The notes below the pieces were generated by a model. That model was not told the DNA's origin. It saw nothing but the letters and a program-made list of their open reading frames with translations, and made no database searches. A DNA stretch of 25,780 nucleotides from Piromyces finnis finn (Eukaryota > Fungi > Neocallimastigomycota). Below, in pieces: positions 101-25,780 of the stretch; the first letter of the stretch is position 1, and each line of letters starts with the position of its first letter. The stretch covers positions 1 to 25,780 of the forward strand of contig MCFH01000144.1 in the NCBI GenBank assembly GCA_002104945.1, read 5' to 3'. Position numbers and translations under genes: made by a program.

Positions 101-1269
101 AAGTGAAACAAAAAATTATTTACCATATCATCATAATTTTTTTAAAAAATATTAAACTAATCATTATACAAATAAAACCAATTATCACTTAAGAGAAAAA
201 TTACTATTTAAAAGGGAAAAAAAAAAAAAAGCAATTAGATATTAGTTTTATATTAATAATAATAGCATCATTAAGAAAGAAAATATACATATACACAAAC
301 ATTAACAAAACCATTTTTATTTTCATTTCATAAAACAATATATCCAATATATATAGATAGATATATGTCATTTTAGATAATAACTAAATGAAGTGAATTT
401 TTTTTCTTACATCATATATCTATTTATATAGAGTATTATTATAGTTTTATTTATTAAATTTGTAATTAATTCATACATAAAAAACACCACACACCACAAA
501 AAAAACGAACAATTTTTTTAATTTTATTATTATATTATTATTTTATTTTTTTAAACTTTTATAGTATATAATTTTTTTTTTAAAAAAATTTTTTTATTTT
601 TTCTTTATTTTATTAACTTTTTATTTTTTTATTTTTTTTTTTTTTTATTTATTTTAATAATATAAAATTCTTAAAAATAATTTTTTTTTTAAATTAAATT
701 AAAAAAGAACATATAAATCAATGATAAAAAAAAATAGTAAATGAAATAACAAAAGTTAATAAAAATTAAAGAATAAAATAAAAAAAATTTTTTTAAAAAA
801 AAAATTATATACTATAAAAAAGTTAAAAAATATAAAATAATAATAATAATAATAAAAATTAAAAAAATTGTTCGTTTTTTTTGTGTGTGTGTTGTTTTTA
901 TGTATGAATTAATTACAAATTTAATAAATAAAACTATAAAATACTCTATATAAATAGATATATGATGTAAGAAAAAAAAATTCACCTTTCATTTAGTTAT
1001 TATCTAAAAATGACATATATCTATATATATATATTGGTATATATTGTTTATGAAATGAAAATAAAAATGGTTTTGTTAATGTTGTGTATAGTATATTTTT
1101 TTCTTAATGATGCTATTATTATTAATATAAAAAACTAATATCTAATTGCTTTTTTTTTTTTTCCCTTTTAAATAGTAATTTTCTCTTTAGTGATAATTGG
1201 TTTTATTTGTATATATGATTAGTTTAATATTTTTAAAAAATTGATGATAATGGTAAATAATTTTTTGTT

Positions 1270-5785
<4,516 letters not shown>

Positions 5786-5914: not shown

Positions 5915-7256
5915 TAAAAATAAAAATTTAAATATGAACAATTAATAGAAATTATCTTTTTATTTTTTTATATAATTCTTTAATATCTTAAAATATTATT
6001 GGCTGGTCAAACCATATATTATTAATATATTATGGAATTTTTAAATATTTTTTTATATAAAATAAATAACTTTTTTACAATTAAATAGAAATAAAGAAAA
6101 TGAATTAGAATGGAATAAATATACAAATATTTCACTAATAATATTAATAGGTATTATAAATATTATGTTTTTAAATAAATATATGCTTAACATTTATCTA
6201 TTTATTATTAATAGCAATATTATTATTTTTAAAAATAAATTAATTAATAAATAAAAATAAATAAATTCGAAACAGTTACAATTACAATATCCCAATTAAC
6301 AGCTTTTTAAAATCTACAATTTAAAATATCACAATAAAATGTATTTTTTTTTAAATAAAATTCTCTATCCAGTAGTTAAATGTTTTTCATGTTCTTTAGA
6401 TGTTCTTTTTTCCTAGTAATTTTAATTATTTTTATTATTTTAGATAAAATAATTGATCAATAACTTTATATCTTCTGTCATAAAGGAATTCAAAAATTTA
6501 ATACTTTATTAGATTCATTTAAATTCTTAATTATAACAATATAGCTGAACTTAGGAAACCTTGTATGTTTCTTTATATAATAGCATTTAATCTTTAATTT
6601 TATTTATATTGTTCTATGAAGACTCTATATATGTACTTTATGTACTTTTTAGTTTAATTGAAAATAAATATTTTCGAATCCATAAATTTGTTAATTCAAT
6701 AAAGGTAAAAATTTGCTATATATAATAGATAGTAGATATTTTTGAACTTTCTATTAAATGAACAAACAATGGCATTAATAGTTCTACGTGCAACTAACTA
6801 CTAATAATATAATCAGAAATTCTTTTAATTTCTGAAGTATTATAATTTTCATAAGAAAATGACAATAAAAGTAAATGAAAAAATAATATTGTTACTTAAA
6901 GGTTATATTAATATCGGTCACACTTCCTAGTTCCTTTTCTATTATGAATATTATTTTAAATTTATGATTTAAATAGCATTATAAATAATCAATAAATATT
7001 ATTAATTTCTCCAATAAAGTTGTAATATATAAATTAATATAAATTCGAATTGGTAAAGGATTTAATTTTGTTATATCTATATTTAAACCGAAACATATAT
7101 ATTATTTCTATTTTAAAACGAAATTTCTCGAATTAAATTATTAATAATAATATATACATTTATATATAAAGAGAAGGCAATATAGATGGATTAGAAATAA
7201 TACTTTTAAGTTATGAAAAATTTTGTTAATAAACTTTATAAATTTTTTGTTAAAAC

Positions 7257-7646
7257 TTAATTATTAATAAATTTGTTAGAAAATCTCAAATTTTAATATA
7301 AATTTTATTAATTAGTAAAATGTAGTTAACATAATGTAATGTATTGATAATGTATGTACTTTAGTATTAGATTTAAGTATAAATACAAAATGTAATTGTT
7401 AATTAAAATTTTAAATAAATTGTTAATAAATTATCATAATAAAGTAAATATTAATTATTAATAAAATTTGTTAATCAAATTTTAATATAAATTTATTAAT
7501 TAGTAAAATGTAGTTAACATAATGTAATGTATTGATAATGTATATACTTTGGTATAAGCCATGGATTTTAGTATAAATACAAAAATGTAATTGTTAATTA
7601 AATCTTTGTAATAAATTATTAATAAATTACCATAATAAAGTACATA
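7257..7646. repeat. Tandem duplication, 2 copies of a ~194-bp AT-rich unit
   Basis: Both copies (from 7257 and 7451) contain attagtaaaatgtagttaacataatgtaatgtattgataatgtat and gtataaatacaaaa(a)tgtaattgttaattaaa. Confidence 0.9.
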
Positions 7647-7669
7647 ATAAAAAACAAAAAATTCTAACA

Positions 7670-8235: not shown

Positions 8236-8846
8236 TGTAAAGTCAGACACTAAACCGAATAGATTAGGATATCTAACCTATTACAATAACAACATAAATA
8301 AATATGTTTTATAAAGAATAGTTTATTTTTATTAATTTATTGTAATAAAATTGTTAATAACAATTACATCGATAAAATGATGAAAAATATCTTCTATTTA
8401 TATTTTTCCTAAATACATTTATATTATATTATAACTATTTATTTCTTATATATTATTATTTAAATCTACACTAAATCTTAATTATTAATAAATATTTAAA
8501 CTATAACTATTTTTAGTAAAATACAATTGGCAATTCAAATTAAGTACTATTCAATTTGAATATGTGCCCATGTATTATTGATATATTAATCATTTATTAT
8601 TATATATTAGTTATCTATTTCTATGAAAAAACAATACTAAAACTAGGGATTTAAATGAGAATTTTAATTTACTTGTTAAACATTAAAAATAAATTAATAA
8701 TTTATTTTGTTTTAAACTTTAATCATTAATAAATAAATTATGTCTCATTTTCTTTTTCTGTAATATAATTTGTGTAACTTAAACAATAATACTAGTGGCT
8801 TAAGTTACATTAAAGATATCAAGCTGAGGTGTTTGCTATCTTTATA
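8236..8846. mobile_element. Solo LTR-like element, family B (611 bp), inserted in the LTR of element A
   Basis: Termini TGTAAAG...CTTTATA (CTTTACA in the related copies), flanked by the 5-bp TSD ACAAG (8231-8235 and 8847-8851). Homologous pieces occur at 9778-10438. Confidence 0.8.
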
Positions 8847-8921
8847 ACAAGTAGGTCAGCGTCCAACAACCTGACGGTGAAGCCAGCTTGGGGAAAAGGT
8901 ACAAAATCTATATACGTTACA
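8847..8921 (-). mobile_element. Start of the 3' LTR of chromovirus A (interrupted by solo LTR B; the rest lies left of 8236, end not defined)
   Basis: On the minus strand, TGTAACG follows the purine tract AGAAGGAGGACA directly after the pol stop codon. Confidence 0.8.
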
Positions 8922-8932
8922 ATGTCCTCCTT

Positions 8933-9777
8933 CTAATGTCGGATTCCAGACGACATTGAGTGTGGTTTGTCTGGAAACTTTTTGTGGAAAGCCTTCAGTA
9001 ACTCGGGGACATGTATGTCTTCTATGTTTTCCCATGAACGATCTTCAGCAGAATATCCTTTCCAATCAACAAGATACTGAAGTACTCCGATGTTAATTTT
9101 ATAATCCAATATTTCATTTACTTCATACTCTAGTTCATCGTTACTAAAATGGAGGCGGCTTTTGAATGTCTCGGTTTTCAAAGGTATTCTCAATATAGGG
9201 CTCAAGATTGGATATATAGAAAATGGGGTGTCTTCGGTCTCGTTTGGATGGTTTTAACTTGAAATTTTGATTTTCCAAGCATTCAATAATTTCTTCACAT
9301 TGTTTTCCTTTGGGATAGAGTAACTATACTTGTCACCTACATTTAAATTGGGAATCTCTTGTCTTTTCCTATCAGCATATTCTTTAAATTTTTCTTGGGC
9401 TTCTTTCATATTTTCCTTTAGTTTGTCAAGTGCATACCAATGTCACATACAACTTTCTCCGCTTCTGGAACTAAAGATATTATTGGAAGGTCAATTAAAA
9501 ATTCTGGATCATACTTTAAATTAGCCATGAAAGGTGACATTTTAATGGATTCCTGAATAGCATTGTCATAGGCAAATTTGCGAGTGAGATATACGAACTC
9601 CAGTCAGAAACACCTGAATACTGTTCAATTATACTATTAAGTCTTTCTGTTTGCCCATCAGTCTGTTGGTGATGAGCAATTGAGAGTTTGGATTCACAGT
9701 GAAGCAGCTTACAAAAATGTTGGAAGAATTGGAATTAAATTGTCTACCGCGATCTAATATAATTTCCTTTGGAATAC
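8933..9777 (-). pseudogene. pol: Ty3/gypsy chromovirus A: integrase core C-terminal part plus chromodomain, 5'-truncated by a family B insertion
   Basis: GIPKEIILDRGRQFNS...HHQQTDGQTERLNS (integrase) and EYEVNEILDYK...QYLVDWKGYSAEDRSWE (chromodomain; ORF 8933-9205). Confidence 0.9.
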
Positions 9778-10438
9778 TGTAAAGATATCAAACGCCAAAG
9801 ATTTATATCTTTAATGTAACTGTTATGTTGAACACTGGAAGAATAGATTAGGATATCTATTCTATTACAATAAAACTAAAATTTTAAAATAAAATAAAAA
9901 ATTGTTTTATAAAATGTCTTTTATTATAATAGAATTTTAATAATAACAATTACATTGATAAAATGATAAAAAATATCTTCTATTTATATTTTCCTAAATA
10001 CATTTATATTATATATAACTATTTATTTAAAATATATTATTTAAAACCTACACTAAAATCTTAATTATTAATAAAATATTTAAACTATAACTATTGTAAA
10101 GATATCAAACGCCTCTGTTTGATATCTTTAATGTAACTTAAGCCACAAGTATTATTGTTTAAGTTACACAAATTATATTCAGAAAAAGAAAATGAGACAT
10201 AATTTATTTATTAATAATTAAAGTTTAAAACAAAATAAATTATTAGTTTATTTTAATGTTTAACAAGTAAATTAATATCTCAATTTAAATCCCTAGTTTT
10301 AGTATTGTTTTTTATAGAAATAAATAAATAATAAATGATTAATATATCAATAATACATGGGCACATATTCAAATTGAATAGTACTTAATTTGAATTGCCA
10401 ATTGTATTTACTAAAAATAGTTATAGTTTAAATATTTA
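9778..10438. mobile_element. Three abutting fragments of family B LTR in alternating orientation (9778-9822, ~9823-10093, 10094-10438)
   Basis: 9840-10093 is a direct repeat of ~8256-8510. 10094-10438 is the reverse complement of ~8490-8846. 9778-9822 repeats the same terminus TGTAAAGATATCAAACGCC. Confidence 0.85.
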
Positions 10439-10946
10439 TGTAACGTGTATCTATATAAAATTTACTAATATATGAATTCATAAAATTTATATAGAAAAAT
10501 ATATTATTCCCTATAGGTGATATAATTTGTTTAATTTTATTAGAAATTGTTTTATTAATAATTATTTTTATTTTAAAAATTAAAGTTACAAGTTAATAAA
10601 AACACACCATTTAATTTTTGATTCAAACCACTTCTATTTATACTTTTCTAAATCTGAAGTGGCTAAATAAAAAATTCAATTTTCTTTCGAAATTATCTTT
10701 AAATTAATTAAAAATTACATAAAATGAATCCCGTGATAAAAATACAATAAATATTTAATTTTTCGAATATTCGAACTTATCTTTTTTCGAATAAGTTCTA
10801 TAAGTTTCTATAAGTCATAAATTAAATTGTTAAATAAATAATTTAAAATAAAATTTAGATCAGGGTGTGAGTCGAACCCGAGTGATCTATATTGATGTCT
10901 TAAATACTAACCATTAAGACAAATTAATTCTAATAGATTCGTTACA
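10439..10946 (-). repeat. 3' LTR of element C
   Basis: TGTAACG...CGTTACA termini; direct repeat of 22035-22548; preceded on the minus strand by PPT GGGGAGGACCA. Confidence 0.95.
10868..10921 (-). promoter_or_regulatory. Pol III type-2 promoter-like A box (10921-10911) and B box (10878-10868) in U3 of LTR C
   Basis: TGTCTTAATGG + 32 nt + GGTTCGACTCA; each box matches 10/11 to TRGCNNARYGG / RGTTCGANNCC. Confidence 0.6.
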
Positions 10947-11127
10947 TGGTCCTCCCCAGGATTCGGATACCAGACGAATCTTTGGATTCATTTATGTTTT
11001 ATTAAATAATTTTTTTTTAAACTAATAACTACTATATAATTAACTATACTAATTGAATTACAATAAAAAAAAAAAATTTTTTTTCATATATACATTGATA
11101 TTAAATACATGTTATAGTAAGTTTAAA

Positions 11128-11158
<31 letters not shown>

Positions 11159-11199
11159 ATAAAATTAAAAATAAAATTAAAATAAATTAAAATAAAGTT

Positions 11200-11272
11200 T
11201 CTGTTAGAATCATTTCTTTTCGTTAAATTCCTTAAGTAGCTCTGGACATTCAAATTATTTTCTGGCTCCCAG
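11200..11272 (-). pseudogene. pol: C-terminal tail of the element C chromodomain
   Basis: The minus strand reads WEPENNLNCPELLKEFNEK, continuing ...[12 protein letters not shown] from 17686. Confidence 0.9.
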
Positions 11273-11301
11273 TGTAACGAATATATAATAAAACACACAC
11301 A

Positions 11302-11693
11302 TGTAACGATATAGAGAAATTAGTAACCTGTCTTAGTGGTTAGTAACTAAGACCTTGGTTTGAACTACTCGAGTTCGAAACCTCATTAATATTTTTTTTA
11401 ATTATAAAATATTTTATAACGAAATTTTACCAAAGAAGATAATTCTGATTGGCTTAAAAATTAAGTTGTAAAATTTTTATAAATTTACTTTTAAAAACAT
11501 TATATAAATACGAGTGAAATTCTCAAAAATATTGGGAATTCGAGTTTTTATTAACAAAGAATTTTATAATAAAAATAAAATTATAAACACTAACCTGTTA
11601 TAATTTGTTAAGTGTTCAATAATAAAATTTTATTTGCTTTTTTATTTTCCTTTTTATATATTGTGTTTTATTTATTGAACATTAGTCTTTACA
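11302..11693 (+). repeat. 5' LTR of element D
   Basis: Direct repeat of 16951-17346, differing mostly by small indels; TATAAATA at ~11503-11510. Confidence 0.95.
11329..11399 (+). promoter_or_regulatory. Pol III type-2 promoter-like A box (11329-11339), B box (11372-11382) and T8 terminator (11392-11399) in LTR D
   Basis: TGTCTTAGTGG + 32 nt + AGTTCGAAACC + 9 nt + T8. Confidence 0.65.
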
Positions 11694-12368
11694 AAAAAAC
11701 TCCTAAAATATATAAAACACCTTAGTGTTTAAAAAAGGAAGAATTTTAATTTATTAAAAAATTAAGTAAGTCAGTGAAGCTATTTAACAATAAGGTACTG
11801 AAAACAAAGTAAAACCCACAGTTATTATAAGGGAGCGCCAGGACGCTTAATTTAATAATAAAGAAAAATTCATTTTCTAAATAAAACGTTTCTACTTTTA
11901 ATAAATAAAATTAAATTTATTTATTATTTTTGAAAAAATATTAAAATAACAAAGAAGTTAGGATTCAATACCTCCCTAGCGTGGATAGTTGGACACCTAT
12001 ACGTAATACTTTGTTGTTTAGATATTATTAAATCGGGGAATAAACCTATTTTTTTCTTTCCGCTAATAAGTAAGTGACAATAAAGAACTAATACCGTTAA
12101 TTCCTTTATTGAAAATTTCATTTCCAATATTAACAATTGATAATATCTACGTTATAACAAAGAGCTACAAGGGACCTAGTATGAATACTAATAAAATTAA
12201 ATATTGATGGTCCAATACTATTTAATTTGACTCTTTGTCTATATTTAAATATTTTAATCAATAAATAATAATAAAGATTTAATTTTTTTTTCTTTCTTAA
12301 TTTCTTCAAACATAACTTTATCTTATTTACATAATTTTTATTTTCAAACAATTATATTTTTTAATTTA

Positions 12369-13100
12369 ATGGAAGGACAAATATTTGATACGCCTCACTA
12401 AAAGACGTTTCGCAGGAGACAGAAAATATCTCAAAGGTTCTTAGCCAAAATAGAACTTGTTTTTCTCCTTTATCCCGAAAGATATCAAGATGAAGAGAGC
12501 AAGGTTATCTACCTGATTTCTCGCCTTTATGGAAATGCATTAAATTGGGCCGCTACGCTTATTGACAACCATGATCCATGTCTGACCCAACTACCAAGCA
12601 TTCAAGGAAAGACTAAAGGCATTCTACGGGAACAATGATGCAGTCTACGTAGCCAATCAAATGCTACGTACTCTCAAGCAACATCGTTTGGGCGGCATCA
12701 GAGGATACATCCTTGAATTTAACAAATACTCTGATGAATCTAACTGGAATGAAGAGGCTAAGATGGATGCTTTTATCGCTGGGCCTCAACCAAGAAGTTG
12801 CAATGAAGATATTAGAGATGTTCCCAGGACCAAGAGATTTGTTTTCCCTCCAAACTATTGCAGCTAGAATAGACTCCAGACTTGCTACCAGGGATTATTT
12901 TTGACAAAAATACTAAGGGACCAAGTTCTAATTCCAGCAATGGCTCCAGAAAGGCTTCCACAAATCTAAAAGAAATCCCAAGAAGAAAAGATACTTTGGT
13001 CCGTTATCCAAGGAAGAAAAAGAAAGAAGAAGTAAGGAAAACTTATGTGTCTATTGTGGATCTCCAGGACACCAACTGAAAGATTGTCATAAGAGAAGAA
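12369..13100 (+). CDS. gag: Element D Gag (sushi/PEG10-like capsid plus CCHC zinc knuckle), frameshifted in this assembly
   Basis: FLAKIELVFLLYPERYQDEESKVIYLISRLYGNALNWAATL...; knuckle CVYCGSPGHQLKDC at ~13045-13090; homologous to C gag. Confidence 0.9.
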
Positions 13101-13199
13101 ATAAAAACTCAGCATTCGAATCTTTAGTTTCTCTACAAAATAATTCTACCAATTCCAAGAAAAATCAACAAGATAGGGTAACCTCAAATTTTAAATTAT

Positions 13200-16100
13200 C
13201 GTTTGAACTAGACACAAAATTCTTATAGACTCCGGTTCTACACTTAATCTAATAGATGCCGACTATTGCAACGATCACAATATTCCCTACCACTATGAAG
13301 AAGATTTACCCAACGTATCGGTATTGGTGGTAGCCAAAAACTGTTCGGAGTTACTCCACTTCTTAATCTTCGCTACATGGATCACCTATGCCGTACTGTC
13401 TTTTACGTTACTGATCTACCTGTATATCCTTGTATTCTAGGTCTACGTTGGCTTAAGGAACATAATCCAAGTATTGACTTTGAAAATAATAAATTATCCT
13501 TGGTTCTTCATATTGCTTGGATCATTGTATGACTCTCCCTTCGAATGTTCCCGATTCCATCAGGAAACTTCTGTTTTTTCTACTGATTGCAATAACTCTT
13601 CTTCCGTTTCTTTGCCTATTTTTATTGACAAACCTAAATCTTCTTTTTCAATTCTAAGTTATCTCATTCTCGTAATCCCAAAGAAAATCGTTCTAAATCT
13701 GTCTTAATTAACAATGAATCTGTTAACGATCCTTTATCACAAGAGACTTGTACTGTCATGGCTTCTAATATATCTCTTTCTAAAGTGATTCTTGTTCACC
13801 AAAAAACTCTTTAAAGACTCAAATCCTACTACTAAACTTCCGAAGGAATAGAATCATATATGGACGTCTTTAGCGAATCTTCTGCTGCTCAATTACCACC
13901 TCATCGTCCTTATGATTGCCAAATAAACCTAATCGAAAATGCCAAGCTATTTTATGGACCAATCTACCCACTAACAGACGAAGAAACAAGAGTTTTGAAG
14001 GATTATATCGATGAAAACCTCAAAAAGGGTTTCATTAGGAAATCCAAATCTCCTGCTGGTGCGCCTGTACTTTTCGTTCCTAAAAAGAAGGTGAACTCCG
14101 TCTTTGTCAAGATTATAGGGAACTCAACAAAATTACCATTAGAGATTCCTATCCTCTACCTCTGATTCAAGATATGCTAGAGCATCTTGGTAAAGCGAAA
14201 ATCTTCTCAAATTGGATTTACGATCAGCATATAATTGGTCCGAATCAAAAAGGGTGATGAATATAAAACAGCTTTCACCTGCAAATTCGGCCACTTTGAA
14301 TACCTGGTAATGCCATTCGGACTGAAAAACGCCCCCGGCTGTTTTTCAGCATTTTATCAATGATGTTCTGGAAAATATTCTAGGGATTTTTGTTTATTCA
14401 TATATTGACGATTTAATTATTTTTTCTGAAAACCATAAATCCCACATTAAGCACGTTATCGAAGTCCTGGATCGCTTAAGAATGCTGGGTCTTTATGCTA
14501 AGCTTGAAAAGTGTGAATTCTTTGTTTCCTCTATTGATTTCCTTGGTCATCGGATATCCTCTGAAGGTATACATATGGACCCCAATAAAGTTTCTGCTAT
14601 TATTAATTGGCCAGTTCCGTCCAGTGTCAAGGAAGTTCAATCTTTTATTGGCCTAGCCAACTACTATCGTCGGTTTATTCCTAATTTTGCCAAAGTTGCA
14701 CAACCCCCTTCACAGACTACTTCGTAAAAACGTTAAATTTGATTTTTCCTCTGAAGCTCTTGATGCATTTAATACCATTAAATCATTAATTTCATCTGCT
14801 CCCATCCTGTCTCACCCAAATCGTGATCTTCCCTTTATTGTTGAAACCGGACTCTAGCAACTTTGCTATAGGAGCAGTTCTGTCTCAAAAATCTCCTGAT
14901 GATAAAATGATCCATCCTGTCGCTTTCTATTCAAGATCTCTTACTTCCGCTGAAAGAAACTATCCTATATACGATAAAGAACTTTTAGCTATTGTTAATG
15001 CTCTTGAAACTTGGCGACATTTTCTCAAAGGTGCTTTAACCCGTTTACTATTTATTCAGATCATCGAAACTTACTATATCAAAAGAAACCGGAAAAAATG
15101 TCACAACGTCTTGTTCGTTGGGCCTTTTCCTTTCCGAATTTAACTTTAAAATTCTCTACCGCTCTGGTTCATCTAATGGTAAACCTGATGCGCTTTCACG
15201 AAGACCTGATTATATGGATTCCTCTCTTCCTTCTGATGCTCCTTTTTCGGTTTTACGCCCTGAGAATTTCTGCGCTTTGATTTGTTCCATTTCTTCTCTT
15301 AATGATGAAATATTATCTGAATATGTGAACGACTCTTTTACATTGACATTTGCAATTTTCTTGAAAATAAGAATCTCCCAGCTCCACATCCACAAAGTAA
15401 TAAATTCTCCCTTAGTATAGTTTTCTTCTTTTGATAGTAGAATCTATGTCCCTTTAAATGCCGTCCCTCCGTTTTGAAACTCTGTCATGATTCCCCTCTG
15501 CCGGTCATTTTGGTATCCGCAAAACTATTTCTTTGATCTCTCGTGACTTTTGGTGGCCATCCATTTCTATTGATGTTAAGAATTATATCCGATCTTGCGA
15601 GATTTGTTGCCGCTCCAAGCCTTCTCGTCATAAACCATATGGTTTACTTCAACCCCTTGAGATTAGTGACCATCCTTGGGCTTCTATTTCTATGGATTTA
15701 TTACTGACCTCCCTCCTTCGGATGGATTTAACACTATTCTTGTTGTAGTTGACCGCCTTACTAAAATGTGCCACCTCATTCCCTTTAAAGGTATTCCTTC
15801 TGCTTCTGATACTGCTTTTGCTTTTTGAATTATATTTCAAAATTCACGGTCTCCCCTCTGAAATTATTTCCGATAGAGGCGCGCAATTCACTTCGAAATT
15901 TGGAAATCTATTTGTCAATCTTTGGACGTCAATGTTAAATATTCTTCACCATATCATCATCAATCCAATGGCCAAACGGAGAGGGTAAACTCCGTTGTTG
16001 AACAATATTTAAGATGCTTTTCTAATATAAAGGAACAAACTGGATCAACTTTCTTCCATTGGCAGAATTCAGTTACAATAATGCTGTTCAAGACTCAACA

Positions 16101-16706
16101 AAATTCTCACCATTCTTCCTAAATTATGGTTATCACCCAAAATACTCTCCGGTAATTCCTGACCAAACGAATGTTCCAAGAGCTGAAGAGTTTACAAGAG
16201 ACTTTGAAGACCTAATGGAGAAACTAAAAGAAAACTTAAAGAAGGCCATCCAAGTTCAAAAGAAATATGCCGACAAGTATAGACAAGAACCTCCGACATT
16301 CAAGACTGGTGACAAAGTATGGTTGGATAGCTCCTTGATAATTCATAAAGGAAATAAAAATTTAATCCTAGGAAACTTGGCCCGTTTAGGATAATTAGTA
16401 AAATCTCTAATCTCACTTATAATTAGAATTACCAAAATCGCTGAAGATTTACCCAATTGTTCATGTTTCAAACTAGAACCGTATTATGAAGATAGTTTTG
16501 GAAGAATCAAAGATCCACCTCCACCTATAATAGTAAATGAAGAAGAAGAATACGAAGTAGAAGAAATACTTGATAAAAGAAAGCATTATGGGAAGATTCA
16601 ATATCTAATAAAATGGAAAGGTTATCCGCTTTCAGAAGCATCTTGGGAACCTGAAAGTAATTTAAACTGCGATGAACTAATTAAAAACTTTAATAATTCA
16701 CATTAG
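13200..16706 (+). CDS. pol: Element D Pol (protease, RT, RNase H, integrase, chromodomain), frameshifted in this assembly
   Basis: DSGS protease; [37 protein letters not shown] (RT); [26 protein letters not shown] (RNase H); HHCC, SDRGAQF, GQTERVN (integrase); [10 protein letters not shown]...[16 protein letters not shown] (chromodomain); TAG at 16704-16706. Confidence 0.95.
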
Positions 16707-16809
16707 TAATAGTTATTAATTTAAAAAAAAATTAGTAATTGATAAGAGAAAAAGAGAATAGAAAATAGAAAATAGAAAATGAAAAAATATATTTATAATT
16801 TAATATTCA

Positions 16810-16856
<47 letters not shown>

Positions 16857-16950
16857 AAATGTATTCACTCGTTTCAATTATTTCTTTTATAATAAAGTAA
16901 CAAATAAATTTAGTTGATTCGTCTGGTATCCGAATCCTGGAGGAGGACCA

Positions 16951-17346
16951 TGTAACGAATCATAGAAATTAGTAACCTGTCTTAGTGGTTAGTAACTAAG
17001 ACCTTGGTTGAACTACTCGAGTTCGAAACCTCATTAATATCTTTTTTTAATTATTAAAATATTTATAACGAATTTTACCAAAGAAGATAATTTCTGATTG
17101 GCTTAAAAAATTAAGTTGTAAAATTTTTATAAATTTACTTTTAAAACATTTATATAAATACGAGTGAAATTCTCAAAAAATTATTGGGAATTCGAGTTTT
17201 TATTAACAAGAAATTTTATAATAAAAATAAAATATTAAACACTAACCTGTTATAATTTGTTAAGTGTTCAATAATAAAATTTTTATTGCTTTATTATTTT
17301 CCTTTTATATATTTGTGTTTTATTTATTGAACATTAGTTCTTTACA
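16951..17346 (+). repeat. 3' LTR of element D, with the same A box (16978-16988), B box (17020-17030) and T7 run (17042-17048)
   Basis: Direct repeat of 11302-11693; follows the PPT at ~16939-16950. Confidence 0.95.
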
Positions 17347-17685
17347 ACACACTCTAATGTATCAAATATATATGTATTTTTTTAATAATGTTTATTTATT
17401 AAATTTATTATTATAATACGACTAACTCGCTAGGTCAGTGTATTATCAAACTAAAGACGAAATAAAAAACTAATTTTTATTAATTAATAAAAACACTAAA
17501 GAACTATTTTATCTTTCTTATTCTCTCTTTATACATGAAAATATTTTTTTTTTTTTTTTTAATACAATTTGATAAGTGAATTAATTACTTAATGATTGGT
17601 TATAAAATATAATTATGAAATTTTCATTAATCTAACCTTAATGATTTTCTAGTCTAACCCTTATCATTAGATATACCTCATTACA

Positions 17686-20600
17686 CCCAGGATGCTTCAG
17701 ATATCGGGTATCCTTTCCATTTAATTAGGTATTGGACTTTACCATAATATCTTCTTTGTCCAATATCTCTCAACTTCAATTCTTCATTATTATCCACAAT
17801 AACTGGTGGAGGTGGCGGTTGCTTTCTTTTGAACTTATCTTCATGTAGGGTTCCAATTCTGAAACGTGGATGACTGGATGAATACGAATTTCTTTGGTAA
17901 CTCCAATTTGAAAGAAACTGGAGAAATTTTTTCAATTACTCTGTACGGACCAAGTTTTCTAGGTTTTAGCTTCTTATTGCCATTCCGCAATATTAGAGAA
18001 CTGTTGATCCAGACCTTATCATTTACCTTGAGTTCAGGAGCTTTACATCTATGTTTGTTTGCAAATTTTTCTTGTTGATTAATAGATTTCTTAAGTTATC
18101 TTAAGAGTTTTAATTATTCTTTGAATTTCTTGTAAATTCATCCGCAATTGGTACTCGGTACGACTTGGTAAGATTGGAGAATGTTTCGGATTATAGCCAT
18201 AGTTAGCAAAAAATGGTGAAGTTTTAGTAGATTCTTGAACGGCATTGTTGTAACTGAATTCGGCAAGATGTAAGAATTTGTACCAATTGGAACCTTTATA
18301 ATTTGAGTAACACCTTAAGTATTGTTCTACACGGAGTTTACCCTCTCCGTCAGCCCGTTGTTTGGTGGTGGTAGGATAAGAAATTTTAGGTTTATATCGA
18401 AAGATTTACAAATAGAATTCCAGAATTTAGAGTGAATTGAGTACCTCTATCCGAAAAATTTCATTTGGTAATCCGTGGAGACGAAAAACGTTGATCATGA
18501 AAGCATCAGCAGTATCGGAGGCAGAAGAATGTTCTCAAAAGGAATAAAATGACATAATTTAGTTAATCTATCAGTGACAACGAGAATGCAAGTATACTTT
18601 GAGAAGTGGAAGATCTGTAATAAAGTCCATAGATACGGAAGACCAAGGACGTTCAGCAATTTCCAAAGGAGAAGAAATCCATAAGGTTTGGTCGAGAGTC
18701 CTTTGAACGGCAGCATATTCACAGACTTTACATATTCTTTAACATCAACAGAGAGAAAAGGCCACCAAAAGTCACGACAATGAGAGAAGTAGTTTTCTTC
18801 AGTCCGAGTGTCCAGCGGAGGGTGAGTCGTGACAAATCTTAAGAACTTCAAACGACAATCATGAGGACATAGATCCTATCATTGAATAATAATACACCAT
18901 CTTGGAATTTAAAGTTTTCGATTTGTGAATGAGTATTGGTGGAATTTGAGTTTCTAAGTACTTGCATACTTAAAGTAGAATTTATCATCTTTGCTATTTG
19001 AAATGATTTTGTCATAAAGGGTTGTTATCTAGAACCAGGGCACAAAAGTTTTCAGGTCTAAGAACGGAATTTGAGTATCATAGAATCCTAAAATTTTCTA
19101 AGTAATCTGGTCTTCTGGATAAAGCGTCAGGTTACCATTAGCAGAACCGACCGATAGACATAATGAAGTTAACTCGGTAAGAAACAGGACCAACGAACTA
19201 TCTTTGGGTCATTTTTTCGGGTTTCTTCTGGTAGAGCAAATTCCTGTGATCCGAGAAAATTTTGAAAGGCTGAGCAGTCCCTTGAGTAAATGACGCCAAT
19301 TTTCTAAAGCAGCTACAATTGCTAAAAGTTCTTTATCGTAGATCGGATAGTTCCTTCCAGAAGAACTAGCGATCTAAAGAAGAATCTACAGGGTGAACAG
19401 AATTGTCTTTTGGATTCGTTTGGGAAAGGATGGCACCTATAGCAAAATTACTTGCATCCGTTTCAACCATGAAGGTATATCGCGATTCGGGTACGCAAGG
19501 ACAGGAGAAGAAACAAACTTAGTTTTGATTATATTGAATGAATCTCACACTCAGAGAGAAGCAGAATTTAACATCCTTTTAAGTAATGCATTAAGTGGTT
19601 TGTGCAAGATCAGCAAACCTGCAATGAATCTTCTATAATAATTAGCTAACCCAAGAAATGCTTGAACTTCTTAACGTTTCTAGGAGTTGGCCATTCCAGG
19701 ATAGATGCAATCTTTTTAGGATCCATTAAAATACCATCAGACGATATACGATGACCTAAAAAATCGATAAATGGGACAAAAAACTCACATTTTTCAAGTT
19801 TTGCATAAAGTCCCGCTTTCTAAGTCTGTTAAGTACTTCTTACTTGCATAACATTGTTTCAAATTTTCCGAAAAAAATAAGTCATCAATATAACTGAAGA
19901 CAAATACTCCCAAATTCCATCAAGCACATCATTAATGAAATGTTGGAATACTGCAGGCGCGTTCTTCAAACCAAACGCATTACAGTAATATTCAAAGTGT
20001 CCATATTTGCAAGTAAAAGCAGTTTGAATTCATCACCTTCTTTTATCCTCACAAGATTGTAAGCTGATCTTAAATCAATTTGGAGAAGATGTTGCTTTTA
20101 CCTAAGTGCTCCACATATCGTTAATTAGTGGTAAAGGATAGGAATCACGGACTGTGATTTCATTCAATTTCCTATAATCTTGACAGAGACGTAGTTCACC
20201 ATTTTTTTGGAACAAAGAGCACTGGGGCACCTGCCGGTGATTTGAAGTCTAATGAAACTTTTCGCAAATTTTCATCAATATATTCCTCATACCATTGATT
20301 CTTTATCCGTTAAGGGATAAATTGGTCCATAAAAAAGTTTAGAGTCCGGCTAAGAGGATTTCACAGTCGTATTGCCTATGAGGCGGCAATTGTTCAGCGG
20401 CTTTTCATTAAATACATCTTTCAAAGCTTGAAGTTCAGCAGAAGAATAACTTCTTTATTGTTTGTAGGCTTGATGGTGGAATCGTGATTTTTGGAGAACT
20501 TTTTGTTAAATCATGGATATAAGAATTGTTGAAGTGCTACAAGAAGGTTTGGAATCATTAGAAATAGAAGAAATAACATAAGTAGGGCACGTTAGGAATA

Positions 20601-20960
20601 ATAGAGCAATGTGACAGACAGAAATTTGAATTAAAAGATATTCTTTTTCAACGAAGTTAATATTAGGGTTGTGTTGATGTAGCATTCACACTAAGATGCC
20701 GCAATATCCCGAAGGTCTACGATATAGATATAGCTTTACATTGGTGGTTTTTGTATTTGATCGAAATTGGGATAGATTTACCTAAGATTGTTGTTCCCAC
20801 CCAATGCCAGAGATTTTGTTGAAAGAGACGGATTTATCAAAAGGAATATTATTTTCTTCGGCAAAGACCACATCTAGTAGGTTAAGTTGGGATCCTGAAT
20901 CAATTAGTAATTTGTATTCACGGAGACGTCGAAGTATTGAGTTGGAAATCAAAGACTGGC
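17686..20960 (-). CDS. pol: Element C Pol (protease, RT, RNase H, integrase, chromodomain N-terminal part), frameshifted and interrupted by insertion
   Basis: [66 protein letters not shown] and [16 protein letters not shown] on the minus strand. Confidence 0.93.
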
Positions 20961-21039
20961 TGTTTCAGATTGGGTTTCGGAGAATCTTATTCTAGGCTTC
21001 TTTTCAGGCATAGTGTTAAAATATGAATCCCAGCTGATT

Positions 21040-21762
21040 TTCATTTTTATTTCTTTTGGGCAGTTATTTAACTTATGATCAGGAGAACCACAATACAGGC
21101 AGAGATTTCCTTAATTCTTCTAGCTTTTTTCTGAGGAAAGCGGTCCATAAGTTCTTATTTCTGAGTGCAAGGTTTTCTATTGCTTCAGTTCTTCGTTTGA
21201 GTAGTGTTAATAGAATGATTGTTGTTGAAAAATCTTCTATTGGTATCGATTCTAGAATCGATTCTTGATGCAATAACTTGTAAATTTAGCAACGTTTGTG
21301 GACCGGGAAACATTTCTAAAATCCTATTGGCGACTTGATCTTGTAGTCCAGCTAAGAAGGCATCCATTTTCGCACTTTCGTTCCAAGAAGAGTCATCGGA
21401 GTATCGGTTAAATTCAAGAATATATTTTGAATCTCACCGATTTTCCTTTGCTTTATAGTTCGAAGTTTTTGATTAGCCACAAACGTTGAGTCGTTGTCAC
21501 CAAACACAGATTTAAGCTTGGCAACGAATGAGTCATAATTTAGTAGGCATTCGTCATGGTTGTGAATTAATGATGCAGCCCAATTTAAGGCTTCACCATA
21601 TAGTCTCGAAATGATATAAACGATTTTTGCTTCGTCATCCGCGTAACGCTCTGGGTAGACCATAAAGATTAATTCTATTTTAGCGAGAAAACCCTTAAAG
21701 AAACGACGATTTCCAGCGAAACCATCCTTCAATGTAGCATTATTCATCAATTCTTCATCCAT
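21040..21762 (-). CDS. gag: Element C Gag with CCHC zinc knuckle, frameshifted in this assembly
   Basis: ORF 21352-21762 (FKGFLAKIELIFMVYPERYADDEAKIVYIISRLYGEALNWAASL), continuing MDAFLAGLQDQVANRILEMFPGP and ending with CLYCGSPDHKLNNC at ~21100-21057. Confidence 0.92.
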
Positions 21763-21823
21763 TTTCTTTATTTTATTTTATTGATAATATCTAATTTTAA
21801 TTTAATTTAATGAGTATAATGTA

Positions 21824-21960
21824 TCCAAAAGAATCCAAAAACAAAATCCAAAAGAGTCCAAAAGAGTCCAAAAGAGTCCAAAAGAGTCCAAGAGAGTTCA
21901 AGAGAGTCTAAAAGAGTCCAAGAGAGTTCAAGAGAGTCCTAAAGAGTTCAAGAGAGTTCA
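21824..21960. repeat. 10-bp minisatellite (TCCAAAAGAG / TTCAAGAGAG), ~13 copies, in the 5' leader of element C
   Basis: Directly visible periodic array. Confidence 0.95.
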
Positions 21961-22024
21961 GTAAGTTTAAAAAAAAAAATATATATAACAAATTAATCAA
22001 GGTAAAGGGAATATGTTACAACCG

Positions 22025-22034
22025 GTGTTTTTAT
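22025..22034 (-). promoter_or_regulatory. Self-priming-type PBS of element C (ATAAAAACAC)
   Basis: Abuts the 5' LTR end and is complementary to GTGTTTTTAT, 29 nt downstream of the TATA box in the same LTR (22208-22199). Confidence 0.7.
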
Positions 22035-22548
22035 TGTAACGTGTATCTATATAAAAATTTACTAATATATGAATTCATAAAATTTATATAGAAAAATATT
22101 ATTTATTTCCCTATAGGTTGATATAATTTGTTTAATTTTATTAGAAAATTGTTTTATTAATAATTATTTTTATTTTTAAAAATTAAAGTTACAAGTTAAT
22201 AAAAACACACCATTTAATTTTTTGATTCAAACCACTTCTATTTATACTTTTTCTAAATCTGAAGTGGCTAAATAAAAATTCAATTTTCTTTCGAAATTAT
22301 TCTTTAAATTAATTAAAAATTACATAAAATGAATCCCGTGATAAAAATACAATAAATATTTAATTTTTCGAATATTCGAACTTATTCTTTTTTCGAATAA
22401 GTTCTATAAGTTTCTATAAGTCATAAATTAAATTGTTAAATAAATAATTTAAAATAAAATTTAGATCAGGGTGTGAGTCGAACCCGAGTGATCTATATTG
22501 ATGTCTTAAATACTAACCATTAAGACAATATTAAATTTCTAATAGATT
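22035..22548 (-). repeat. 5' LTR of element C; its outermost ~7 bp are displaced by insertion of F; A box 22527-22517, B box 22484-22474
   Basis: Direct repeat of 10439-10939; where the other copy continues cgttaca, this one continues TGTTAAGG. Confidence 0.93.
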
Positions 22549-23254
22549 TGTTAAGGAACCAACAAATAATGTTATTCTTGTCATAATTAATGATTATGAC
22601 CTAATCCATTATTGTTCCTAAATATATGAAAACTTTACAATATTCTTATTTGTAAATTAATGTATACACTTAAATTATATTTAAAATTATTAATAATTAT
22701 TTTTATTGAACTTAAATTTTATTTTATTAAACTTAAAAATTAATTTAGTAATAATAATATATTGAAAATTATAGTTTATTGAACTTTTAGTTTAATTTAT
22801 CAAGTTAATGAATTTTTATTAATTAAAATTATGAATAATATTTCTGTAAAATAGTAAAATTCTTTAGTTAAATATATTTAAAGTAAACTTTTAATGTATG
22901 TTAATCAATTTAATAATATGTATAAATATTTATTATAATAGTAATGTAATTTTATTATTCATTTAAAAGTAATTTAAATACTAAAATTAATGTAAATAAT
23001 TAAAGACTAATTCTTTTAATTAACACTACTTAATTTTTTACAAAAAGTATAAAAAGGTGTATATTATAAGAATTAGAGAATATACAGATATTTTTATTTT
23101 TTTTTTTTATTTTATTTTATAAATTTATATTAATATCTTAATAAAACAATTTTATTAATAAAACAATTTTTCTTATTTCATTTTAATATTTTTTTGAGTA
23201 TTAATAAATTTATTAATATTTTATAAATAAAAGTAAATTCCTCGAACCGTAACA
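22549..23254 (+). repeat. 5' LTR of element F (~706 bp)
   Basis: Termini TGTTAAGG...CCGTAACA (7/8 inverted match), followed by a tRNA-type PBS and, further on, a gag ORF. The second LTR is outside the window. Confidence 0.75.
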
Positions 23255-23279: not shown

Positions 23280-24619
23280 ATAATATTAATAAAATTATTA
23301 ATACATAGGATAAAGTAATATTAAAATATTACTAAAATATTATATAAATTTCTTAAAATTTATTACCCTTCAAAGTTATAGGTAATATTTATATTACTGT
23401 TGAAGCTTTAAGGTATAATATTTAGTAGAACTGAATTAGTACGCTTTAGAAGCAGTACTTATTTAGGAATTAGTGGTTAAGTTTTTAGGTCTAGTTTATC
23501 TTTCACAGTAGGATACTGGAAAGCGCTGAACCTTTCTATTTTGCTAGAGAAATAGAAGTGCCTCGCATAATTGCTACATGACACTGGTAATACGGTAAGC
23601 TGGGCAATTGTGAACTACTTAAGCACCCTAAATAAGTATTGGAAAATTGCTGTGAAATGCTGTTCTACTATACTTATTATTGTAATTCAAATTTTTAATA
23701 AATTAAATATTATTTTAGTATTTATAATTTTTTAAAAAAAAAAAAATATTTTTTTTTAATTGAACGATTTTTAAAAATTATTCTTTTTAAAATATAAATA
23801 AATAATTCGAAAGTGACCCTTAGCGTGGCAAGTTAAACTGCTTACGTAATACTTTGGTGTTCAATTATATCTGATAATTGGGGAAGATAATCAATTATTT
23901 TCTTTCCGCTAATTAAGTTAGTGATAATAAAGAAATTAATTACGTTACTTCCTTTTATTAAATTATATTTAATATTAACCATCGGGTATATTTGTGGCTT
24001 ATCATCAAAGAGCTACGAGGGATTTTCACTTAGAATTACACAACCTATAATACTTGATGGTTTAACATTATATAGGTTGGCTTATATTTTTATAAAAAGA
24101 AATAAGTTTTTAAAAAATAATTAATTAAAAAAAAAAAAAAAAAAAAATATAGATATATATATCTATTCTTTTTGTTGATTCTCTTCGAGTAATTTAATAT
24201 TGCTAATTGAAATATTCTTTTCTTACTGTTTTAAGTTAAACAAGTTATATCAGCATAGACAAGCCTTATTAACTAATCAACAGAGGTATACTAGGGGTGG
24301 TAGAAAGATCCTGAAGCACGTGACGGAACTTAGATCGTGTGAATAAGGTGACGGCAAACATTTACCATTGGACGAAAGACTCTTAGTTAATTCTATATAT
24401 ATAATTTGGTCGGTAACTTGAATCAGTAATAACAATATTAAATTAAAATTCTTGCTAGTAAATTGAAAACAAATAATAATTAACTATAAGAAAAACAGAA
24501 AACAAAAGTAATAATTTCATCTTTTCTGACTGAACTAAGATAGTAAGGAGTGATACTAAAAATTTAAATAAATAATTGGTAGTACGTGCTGTGCTAGATT
24601 ATTTGTATCTCATTCTGTC

Positions 24620-24688
24620 AAGTGGTCGATAAAGGAATTTCGAGCTTGGTTACAACTAATAAGTGGTCGATAAAGGAATTTCGAACTT
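24620..24688 (+). repeat. Two 28-nt direct repeats with 41-nt period (AAGTGGTCGATAAAGGAATTTCGA[G/A]CTT)
   Basis: Copies at 24620 and 24661. Confidence 0.9.
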
Positions 24689-24778
24689 ATAATTTTTTTT
24701 AGACTATCAAAGGTATTTTTGAGTCTATACTGTGTCATCTTGTACTGCAATAAATTCGGTCAAGGAAAATACAAGAAA

Positions 24779-25600
24779 ATGAGCAATTCTACTACAAGGA
24801 TAGATTTCAAGGAGTTGAAGAAGGAACTCAAGGATATAGAAAAACTTTCCAAAGATAATTTGGACATAAGATCCTGGGCTTCTGAAATAAGTTTATGGAT
24901 TGAACTTCAAGATATCACTAGTGCCAAGGAAATTTACATGGCATGTGTGCTTACTTCTAAGGGTGAACCAAGAAAGGTAATCCAAGAGTTGGAAGATAAA
25001 GACAGTGATAGTGAAGATGAATATGAAAGTGAAAATGAAGAAGAGAATCAGAAAAATGAATCTAATGAAGAAGATTATCCCTCACTTGGGAAAATTATCA
25101 ATGCCCTTGAAACATTTTATGGGTTAAAAGAAGATCAAAGTATGTTATTACGGGAACTAAGAAGACTACGTATAAGAAGAAATGAATCAGTTAAAGATTT
25201 CAATAGAAGATATAGATCTTTATATTTAAAGTTGGATAAGAAAAAGAAGAAGCAGATTAGTGTGTTAGATTATGCAGATTCTTTACAAAATAATAAAGAA
25301 GCATGGAGAAAAGTATCTTTAAAAGATGATATCACTCTAGAAAAGGCCTTTAAGATAGCTGAGAAGGTAGATAGGTTATCTACTAGAATAGATAATGATG
25401 GTAATCTACCAACGACTACTGCAATAACCAAAAGTTATAATAATTTTCAACCATACAAGAGAAAAGTTTCTTTTACTGAAGCCAAAAAGCCTAATAAGAT
25501 GATAATGAATAACCTAGTCAAGAAATGAAGAATTTAACTATTAAAGCTTTTTTTCTGTAGTGAACCTGGTCATTATCAACAAAATTGCCAAAACTTCAAG
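24779..25600 (+). CDS. gag: Element F Gag-like protein (acidic insert, C-terminal CCHC knuckle); element continues beyond the window
   Basis: Open ORF 24719-25528 (first ATG 24779). In a shifted frame, (C)FFCSEPGHYQQNC at ~25545-25588. It lies downstream of the LTR and PBS and is not alignable by eye to C/D gag. Superfamily not determined. Confidence 0.75.
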
Positions 25601-25780
25601 CCTTATTGAAGGAAACAAGAAGCGTTATGATAATCATTTAAATCATTAAGTGGGAGAAGAAGCACTCCCATCGTCAATAAAATAGCTTCAGCTCAGTATC
25701 AGTCAATGCCAAGTGAAGAAAACAACAAGCCAGAGTGATTGGTCGAAAGAAGAATATGATGAAGAAATCGAAAGTGACTT

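Follow-up and report, generated by a model that had tools for sequence, protein, structure and literature searches.

The window analysed here is a stretch of 25,780 nucleotides from the anaerobic gut fungus Piromyces finnis, very rich in AT (14-38% GC overall, and 17-21% in the six non-coding stretches that were measured). A host gene, RPB2, encoding the second-largest subunit of RNA polymerase II (Pol II), occupies ~1000-5000 on the minus strand, with an exon ORF at 3165-3536; its best matches are solved Pol II structures (E 1e-54), and a cluster of retroelements starts a few kb away. An AT-rich intergenic segment at 7251-7650 holds a ~200-nt tandem duplication (86% identical). Two long elements in the cluster, D and C, were recognized from their paired long terminal repeats (LTRs), D being nested in the non-coding spacer of C, between integrase and polypurine tract, and flanked by a 5-bp target duplication, ACACA (11297-11301 and 17347-17351). 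Pfam and tblastn searches bear out an earlier note on this DNA in assigning both to the chromodomain-bearing Ty3/gypsy retrotransposons. The gene order of chromoviruses as defined in PMC3605345 (gag, reverse transcriptase-RNase H, integrase with a C-terminal chromodomain) was recovered by Pfam in C and its relatives, and D aligns up to residue 313 of the 318 of a chromodomain integrase. Coordinates are collected in Table 1.

Table 1. Elements D and C, their LTRs, coding remnants and Pol III-type units.
Feature	Position	Strand	Remarks
Element D	11302-17346	+	Ty3/gypsy, chromodomain integrase; 6.0 kb
Element C	10439-22553	-	Ty3/gypsy, chromodomain integrase; ~6.1 kb without nested D
D 5' LTR	11302..11693	+	starts TGTAACGA, ends TTTACA; self-blast pair, 94% identity
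D 3' LTR	16951..17346	+	follows polypurine tract 16939-16950
C 3' LTR	10439..10946	-	TGTAACG...CGTTACA; preceded by polypurine tract 10957-10947
C 5' LTR	22035..22553	-	first bases mutated relative to 3' LTR; 96.8% identity to 3' LTR
D gag, broken	12400..12886	+	at least 1 frame change, 5 stops; Pfam Retrotrans_gag
D gag-RT interval (protease-like in relatives), broken	13049..13460	+	2 frame changes, 1 stop
D reverse transcriptase + RNase H, broken	13854..15698	+	6 frame changes, 7 stops; Pfam RT_RNaseH
D integrase with chromodomain, broken	15766..16697	+	3 frame changes, 6 stops; Pfam Integrase_H2C2
C gag, broken	21188..21738	-	1 frame change, 0 stops; Pfam Ty3_capsid
C protease-like stretch	20732-21098	-	2 frame changes
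C reverse transcriptase + RNase H, broken	19093..20518	-	2 frame changes, 32 stops
C integrase with chromodomain, broken	17687..18630	-	2-3 frame changes, 6-8 stops; Pfam Chromo
Unit, D 5' copy	11329..11399	+	A box, hairpin 1, hairpin 2, T8
Unit, D 3' copy	16978..17049	+	A box, B box, T7; covariance-model match
Unit, C 3' copy	10853..10921	-	A box 10921-10911, hairpin 1, B box 10878-10868, then T4
Unit, C 5' copy	22459..22527	-	A box 22527-22517, B box 22484-22474; 67 bits by covariance model
TATAAATA of presumed Pol II promoter, LTR D	11503..11510	+	174 nt downstream of A box

Coding decay was counted by tblastn with the proteins of the closest open relative (locus L045). Against these, D has accumulated ~12 frame changes and ~19 stops over gag, the protease-like part, reverse transcriptase-RNase H and integrase, and C ~7-8 frame changes and ~40 stops, mostly in reverse transcriptase-RNase H, in addition to the nested D; both are dead copies. 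A third chromodomain element lies at 8257-10095 on the minus strand, with most of its inside missing. What remains is a chromodomain ORF (8933-9205), near 8930 a polypurine tract with the LTR start, and two LTR-like repeats (8257-8511 and 9841-10095) that are 84% identical; the LTR of this element starts with TGTAACG. At the right end of the window a D-like element begins on the plus strand (23817-25780), in which 23817-24022 resembles the D leader (76%) and 24779-25528 is an open, gag-like ORF of 249 codons; no unit-bearing LTR was found upstream of it. An exact look-up of the open gag ORF of the window returned no recorded entry.

Tf1-type fungal chromoviruses, which D and C resemble in being Ty3/gypsy elements with a chromodomain integrase, are self-priming. 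In D and C, the bases that follow the 5' LTR (AAAAACTC, 11695-11702, in D; AAAAACAC, 22032-22025 of the minus strand, in C) are complementary to 8 nt located 38-39 nt past the TATA box (GAGTTTTT, 11542-11549, in D; GTGTTTTT, 22208-22201, in C), each of which is followed by ATTAAC, with one compensatory difference between the two elements. This complementarity suggests Tf1-like self-priming, though a match of only 8 AT-rich nucleotides is weak on its own. No tRNA-type primer site was seen after the 5' LTR of either element. We know of no Pol III-type unit in Tf1 LTRs.

The LTRs of both elements contain, 26-28 nt from their start, a motif resembling the A box of an RNA polymerase III (Pol III) promoter and, 42-43 nt from it, one resembling the B box, at the positions where the earlier note had found them. 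In the D 5' LTR, the A-box-like TGTCTTAGTGG (11329-11339) is separated by a 32-nt spacer from the B-box-like AGTTCGAAACC (11372-11382), which is followed after 9 nt by T8 (11392-11399). The D 3' LTR repeats both motifs (16978-16988 and 17020-17030) with a spacer one base shorter (31 nt), as had been noted; the T8 said to recur there is instead a T7 preceded by C (17043-17049), and the T run lies 9-12 nt from the B box across the D copies. On the minus strand of C, the corresponding motifs are TGTCTTAATGG, beginning at 10921 and 22527, and GGTTCGACTCA, beginning at 10878 and 22484. The earlier note has LTR D open with the A box; in fact its first bases are TGTAACGA, at 11302 right behind the polypurine tract, and the A box lies 27 nt in. 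A sequence identical to an LTR start, TGTAACGAAT, is also present 29 nt upstream of D, in the spacer of C (11273-11282, plus strand); with ~0.08 occurrences expected across the window, it is either there by chance or what is left of an older LTR.

Together, the two boxes and the T run form what we call the unit, ~70 nt long, a GC-richer island within AT-rich U3 that lies 170-280 nt upstream of the TATA box. The D 5' unit folds into two hairpins, the first of 8 bp with an 8-nt loop (11330-11353), the second of 10 bp with one bulge (11357-11382), whose 3' strand is the B-box-like motif; the fold has a predicted energy of -19.2 kcal/mol (z -3.1), and the unit scores 74 bits against a covariance model (R1, a search profile of the 62-nt non-coding unit). 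The unit of the C 3' LTR scores 68 bits, and its B box sits inside a GGGT/ACCC stem surrounded by an outer 7-bp stem. Folding reproduces both this outer stem and the hairpins described previously, including the compensatory change from G-C to A-T between D and C.

The unit matches no known small RNA gene by similarity. ARAGORN found no tRNA gene or pseudogene in the window or in 24 loci of relatives, and Rfam returned no tRNA match at E values up to 10, even for queries of 131 and 141 nt, in agreement with the earlier description of the unit as non-cloverleaf. Rfam scans likewise gave no match to 5S rRNA, the source of the promoters of Cassandra and Ajax elements, or to any other family, a snoRNA match of 19 bits against a threshold of 80 being noise. 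The bases after either 5' LTR show no complementarity to the unit, which argues against its RNA serving as a primer. The earlier note had also proposed an RNAi decoy or an integration beacon; nothing pointing to either role was seen in the sequence analysis of the window and relatives, and ARAGORN placed no tRNA gene near any element in the window and the 24 loci.

Relatives were retrieved blind to the boxes, either through the polypurine tract and LTR start or through integrase and RNase H homologues. The last ~35 nt of the element with the polypurine tract, together with the first 9 nt of the LTR, are near-identical in all relatives. This ~35-nt block (16916-16950 in D; 10980-10947, minus strand, in C) lies 200-370 nt after the integrase stop codon, is near-invariant across all LTR families with or without the unit, and contains ATCCGAATCC, which is loosely B-box-like. 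An exact scan of metagenome contigs for the junction yielded ten loci, four of them GC-rich chance matches; GGTTCGA is present 60-80 nt from the U3 start in all six AT-rich loci, five of which also show a clear A box. Applied to bacterial and archaeal genomes and to viral contigs, the polypurine-tract pattern gave chance matches or none. Retrieval through RNase H and integrase added three further carriers, namely L016, L028 (on a scaffold of Piromyces sp. E2, the fungus for which the protein leading to it is named) and L012 (whose 5' LTR was detected by the covariance model), as well as three altered forms. In the first of the latter, L039, the unit is decayed, as it also is in L022; in L029 the boxes are decayed and their spacing is longer by 6, with hairpin 1 retained; and in L043 hairpin 1 and the A box are deleted and the B box is retained in a 9-bp hairpin (hairpin 2), a B-box-only state like that of sites that bind only the Pol III factor TFIIIC.

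In all, ~11 of 15 LTR families of anaerobic gut fungi (Neocallimastigomycota) carry the unit at the same place in the LTR. The integrases of these carriers are only 46-76% identical. The unit is missing from three related LTR types (the L001-L007 type, L046, and the third window element near 8930) and from two distant, GC-richer chromoviruses of other organisms (L047 and L048, 47% integrase identity). In L046, whose integrase is 75% identical to that of the unit-bearing L016, the corresponding place in U3 is taken by a hairpin of ~18 bp, GC-rich and unrelated to the unit, with A/T runs behind it (L046:4120-4175), which hints that some strong hairpin is wanted there. A stretch of L047 (4500-4590) is complementary to the 3' end of a tRNA directly after ...ACA, and ARAGORN and Rfam find no tRNA in it; it resembles the end of an LTR and the primer site of some other insertion rather than the unit.

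Across families the unit starts 26-36 nt into the LTR, and the distance from A to B box is 42-44 nt (a gap of 31-33 nt) in 11 copies, which represent nine LTR sets in three closer groups, so the constant spacing proposed from D and C holds without drift. Against the consensus printed in PMC12498455, the A box matches at 6-7 of 7 and the B box at 8-9 of 10 positions. An A and a B box 30-60 nt apart make up a type-2 Pol III promoter in sequence, a loose pattern that is common by chance: with the published consensus, 84 box pairs were seen as against ~54 in shuffles of 152 kb, a background too high for such matches to stand as evidence by themselves. Nor does a count of four copies in the window where 0.19 are expected say much, as the four are two LTR pairs. 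What sets the unit apart from chance is that LTR families retrieved independently carry it again and again, at one position in the LTR and with the 42-44 nt spacing.

Conservation is concentrated on the promoter letters. An alignment of 62 columns from ten families has 12 invariant columns, 10 of which fall, with the consensus letter, within the 18 columns of the classical boxes (p 2e-5), or 9 of 12 within 17 box columns by the consensus of PMC12498455 (p 1.7e-4). The two invariant columns outside the classical boxes are both A: one is the counterpart of tRNA position 21, the other belongs to the 3' strand of hairpin 1. Over 260 nt of the LTR, pairwise identity has three peaks, 0.56 at the LTR end, 0.71 over the A box and loop and 0.50 at the B box; elsewhere it ranges from 0.05 to 0.52, one more 20-column stretch, just past the unit, also being at 0.52. 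The boxes are better conserved than the surrounding U3 across some ten LTR families, in line with the earlier expectation, and U3 outside the unit is barely alignable, near the level of random identity. The statistics overstate the independence of the observations, because the families are related; they come partly from the same cultures or samples, and the metagenome matches are short contigs.

The T run, too, recurs: T4 follows the unit within 5-22 nt in every family, against a background probability of 0.37. No T4 run occurs inside any of ten units (joint chance ~0.009 if they were independent, which they are not fully), whereas A4 runs occur inside three of the ten. T5 is found within 29 nt after the unit in 7 of ~10 cases, compared with a background of 0.22; it is absent for 125 nt or more in C and L027, and from the short readable stretch of L016. 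A T run after the unit and none within it is the arrangement expected of a Pol III terminator, although the enrichment is modest, and four Ts may not suffice to halt fungal Pol III.

In every unit the fold is a pair of neighbouring hairpins, hairpin 1 with the A box in its 5' strand and loop, and hairpin 2 with the B box in its 3' strand, paired with an upstream GAAC-type stretch. Stems measure 5-10 bp, reaching 9-10 bp in D, L019 and L043. An RNAalifold prediction on the MAFFT alignment gave a weak, non-covarying GGTT/GACC helix, and the hairpins were accordingly defined sequence by sequence. They fold better than dinucleotide shuffles in 8 of 11 families (z -2.5 to -4.9), and no better in C, L028 and L029, with L027 borderline (z -1.6). 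Pairing is possible in 82% of alignment cells, as against 75% after shuffling (none of 500 shuffles reaches 82%) and 26-46% when the pairing partners are slid, figures that flatter the pairing since each structure was defined from the same sequences that were later counted. Compensatory changes across families, which the earlier note had proposed to look for, do occur, with two-sided changes in five base pairs. The box-bearing strands are constant, and their partner strands vary in both sequence and register, the pattern that would be expected of a fixed promoter within a structured transcript. No tRNA-like arm would form, because the T-loop letters fall in the stem, not in the loop, in most families. 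The hairpins do not prove a sense RNA, as either strand folds equally well, the sense strand giving the more stable fold in 6 of 13 cases. A long-distance interaction of the hairpin-1 loop was considered and set aside, a complement ~260 nt downstream being present only in D and L019, and not in C, L020, L025 or L028.

With promoter letters and spacing fixed and the rest free, with pairing partners that follow the fixed strands, and with T runs outside only, the unit is best read as a tRNA- or SINE-derived type-2 Pol III promoter kept in U3, which would bind TFIIIC and probably yield a short RNA of two hairpins; we hold this reading with even confidence. Should a Pol III reading be right, transcription is about twice as probable as a site that only binds TFIIIC, since the A box, the spacing and the T-run pattern have been kept along with the B box. 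Most likely, the unit derives from a tRNA gene or the head of a tRNA-derived SINE that an ancestor of these chromoviruses acquired in the 5' portion of U3; selection would have kept it while the remaining tRNA-like sequence, and U3 around it, decayed. On the DNA of each LTR, TFIIIC would bind the B box and, more weakly, the A box, with TFIIIB placed over the LTR edge and the adjoining flank. Initiation by Pol III is predicted ~10-20 nt before the A box, which is still LTR sequence, and termination at whichever T run comes first, 5-22 nt beyond the B box. The predicted product, an RNA of 70-95 nt with two hairpins side by side, would be distinct from the Pol II-made genomic RNA, which would start ~170-280 nt further on. 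The unit itself cannot promote the genomic RNA, given the T run directly after it and the TATA box downstream.

We infer TFIIIC binding, Pol III transcription and a benefit to the element from sequence. The benefit we prefer is that TFIIIC and Pol III, held at the outer LTR edge, would keep the neighbouring Pol II promoter open in heterochromatin, the target of chromodomain integrases. Such a barrier fits an integrase that carries a chromodomain, and tRNA genes and TFIIIC sites act in this way in yeasts, where TFIIIC-bound B boxes and tRNA genes block the spread of heterochromatin (PMC2040200, PMC3395662, PMC4502379). The yeast ETC and COC barriers are host loci, ETC sites having a B box only, and barrier activity of the LTR unit is purely conjectural. 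Alternatively, the element could profit from a small RNA that acts in trans, as foamy viruses do.

The hairpins lend themselves to a different account, in which the unit is a cis-acting structure in the U3 of the genomic RNA, or in minus-strand DNA near the polypurine tract, with a role in replication, packaging, RNA stability or 3'-end formation, and the likeness to Pol III boxes is a relic or coincidence. Such a structure would explain why the hairpins are kept through compensatory changes and register shifts and fold better than shuffles in most families, why both strands fold equally well, why the unit lies within a few tens of nucleotides (26-36) of the plus-strand primer site in every family, why L029 retains hairpin 1 without good boxes, and why L046 has a different strong hairpin in the same place. 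It leaves unexplained, however, that the invariant letters are those of the A and B boxes, that their spacing is that of a tRNA gene, and that the box strands are fixed while their partners vary; the search for a long-range partner, moreover, turned up only the loop complement of D and L019. We consider this account the main competitor, and on balance rather unlikely.

The unit might instead be the functionless leftover of a tRNA or SINE insertion, its apparent conservation reflecting no more than the recent common origin of the LTR families. D and C are both dead and the unit is decaying in L039, L029 and L022, as such a leftover would be; yet the carriers' integrases have diverged as far as the identities above indicate and U3 is otherwise near random identity, while the unit still keeps its position, its spacing and its 12 invariant columns, which makes a leftover improbable. 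An upstream Pol II promoter element, made of ordinary transcription-factor sites with the inverted repeats as dimer sites, would suit both the position upstream of the TATA box and the GC-richer composition; we think it quite improbable, because the stems differ between families with complementarity kept, unlike protein half-sites, and the conserved letters are those of the Pol III boxes. Least probable is a docking site for a host tRNA, comparable to the part of the bipartite primer-binding site that yeast Ty3 has in U3, in which strands complementary to the D and T arms would anchor the primer tRNA and link the two ends of the genome: each hairpin does pair a tRNA-sense strand with its complementary strand, but it is the tRNA-sense strands that are conserved and the complementary ones that vary, and no tRNA-type primer site was seen past the 5' LTR, where the sequence suggests self-priming.

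A Pol III-type promoter in an LTR has precedents, from which the present elements differ. Helenus, Cassandra and Ajax are TRIMp3 elements with a Pol III promoter derived from a small RNA in the LTR; they are non-coding, 0.3-1.3 kb long and thought to be transcribed whole by Pol III, occur in fungi as well, and have a polypurine tract and 5-bp target duplications (PMC10886601). The Helenus LTR is tRNA-derived, conserving box A and the GGTTC of box B, usually in the absence of a functional tRNA, and fungal Helenus elements have been tied to Copia partners in rusts and some mushrooms (PMC10886601). D shares with Helenus the same kind of boxes, conserved in the LTR and presumably tRNA-derived, as well as the 5-bp duplication, and the pattern of fixed promoter letters agrees with the one described for Helenus LTRs by Kojima (2024). 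Of the other marks of fungal members, a polypurine tract is present, and a tRNA-complementary primer site was not seen. D is not a short non-coding element: D and C retain remnants of gag, reverse transcriptase-RNase H and chromodomain integrase, the carriers being ~6-kb gag-pol Ty3/gypsy chromoviruses of Neocallimastigomycota. Autonomous partners of TRIMp3, it has been argued, depend of necessity on Pol II, and LTR sequence of this kind is not expected in them (PMC10886601).

Foamy viruses have Pol III-driven miRNA cassettes in U3 (PMC7693620), and the Pol III-driven miRNA cassette of bovine leukemia virus (BLV) uses type-2 A and B boxes (PMC12498455). These viruses, compared here by description, not by sequence, are likewise reverse-transcribing elements with a short Pol III unit of their own beside a Pol II promoter; their hosts are mammals, and their hairpins are of pre-miRNA size (~20 bp or more) and processed by Dicer, whereas the 5-10 bp stems found here are too short for such processing. 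With tRNA genes and SINE heads the unit shares boxes 31-33 nt apart and a following T run, and with SINE heads the survival of the promoter letters only, but it has no cloverleaf, acceptor stem, anticodon arm, or SINE body or tail.

A literature search found no description of a Pol III LTR unit in autonomous fungal chromoviruses or in these fungi. The novelty supposed in the earlier note therefore stands for the chromoviruses, but not for the principle, already published for TRIMs including fungal Helenus (PMC10886601) and for foamy viruses (PMC7693620). What is new is a Pol III-type promoter that is present, and has long been retained, in fungal chromoviruses of autonomous type that are driven by Pol II. 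Tentatively, and with more doubt than we attach to the promoter itself, autonomous chromoviruses of gut fungi may carry an expressed Pol III gene in each LTR, acting as a chromatin barrier or as a trans-acting structured RNA; the foamy-virus cassette would thereby have an equivalent in fungi, and TRIMp3 elements a likely source.

Pol III promoters in LTRs have so far been a matter of non-coding miniatures, in which Pol III is thought to make the transposing RNA, and of foamy viruses, in which it makes miRNAs. That full-size elements driven by Pol II have kept such a promoter, in many diverged families, suggests that retroelements put the Pol III machinery to a second use, and lets one ask, on a concrete example, whether mobile elements targeting silent chromatin carry a boundary with them. 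In the repeat-rich and poorly annotated genomes of gut fungi, such units will be miscounted as tRNA-like or SINE-like loci.
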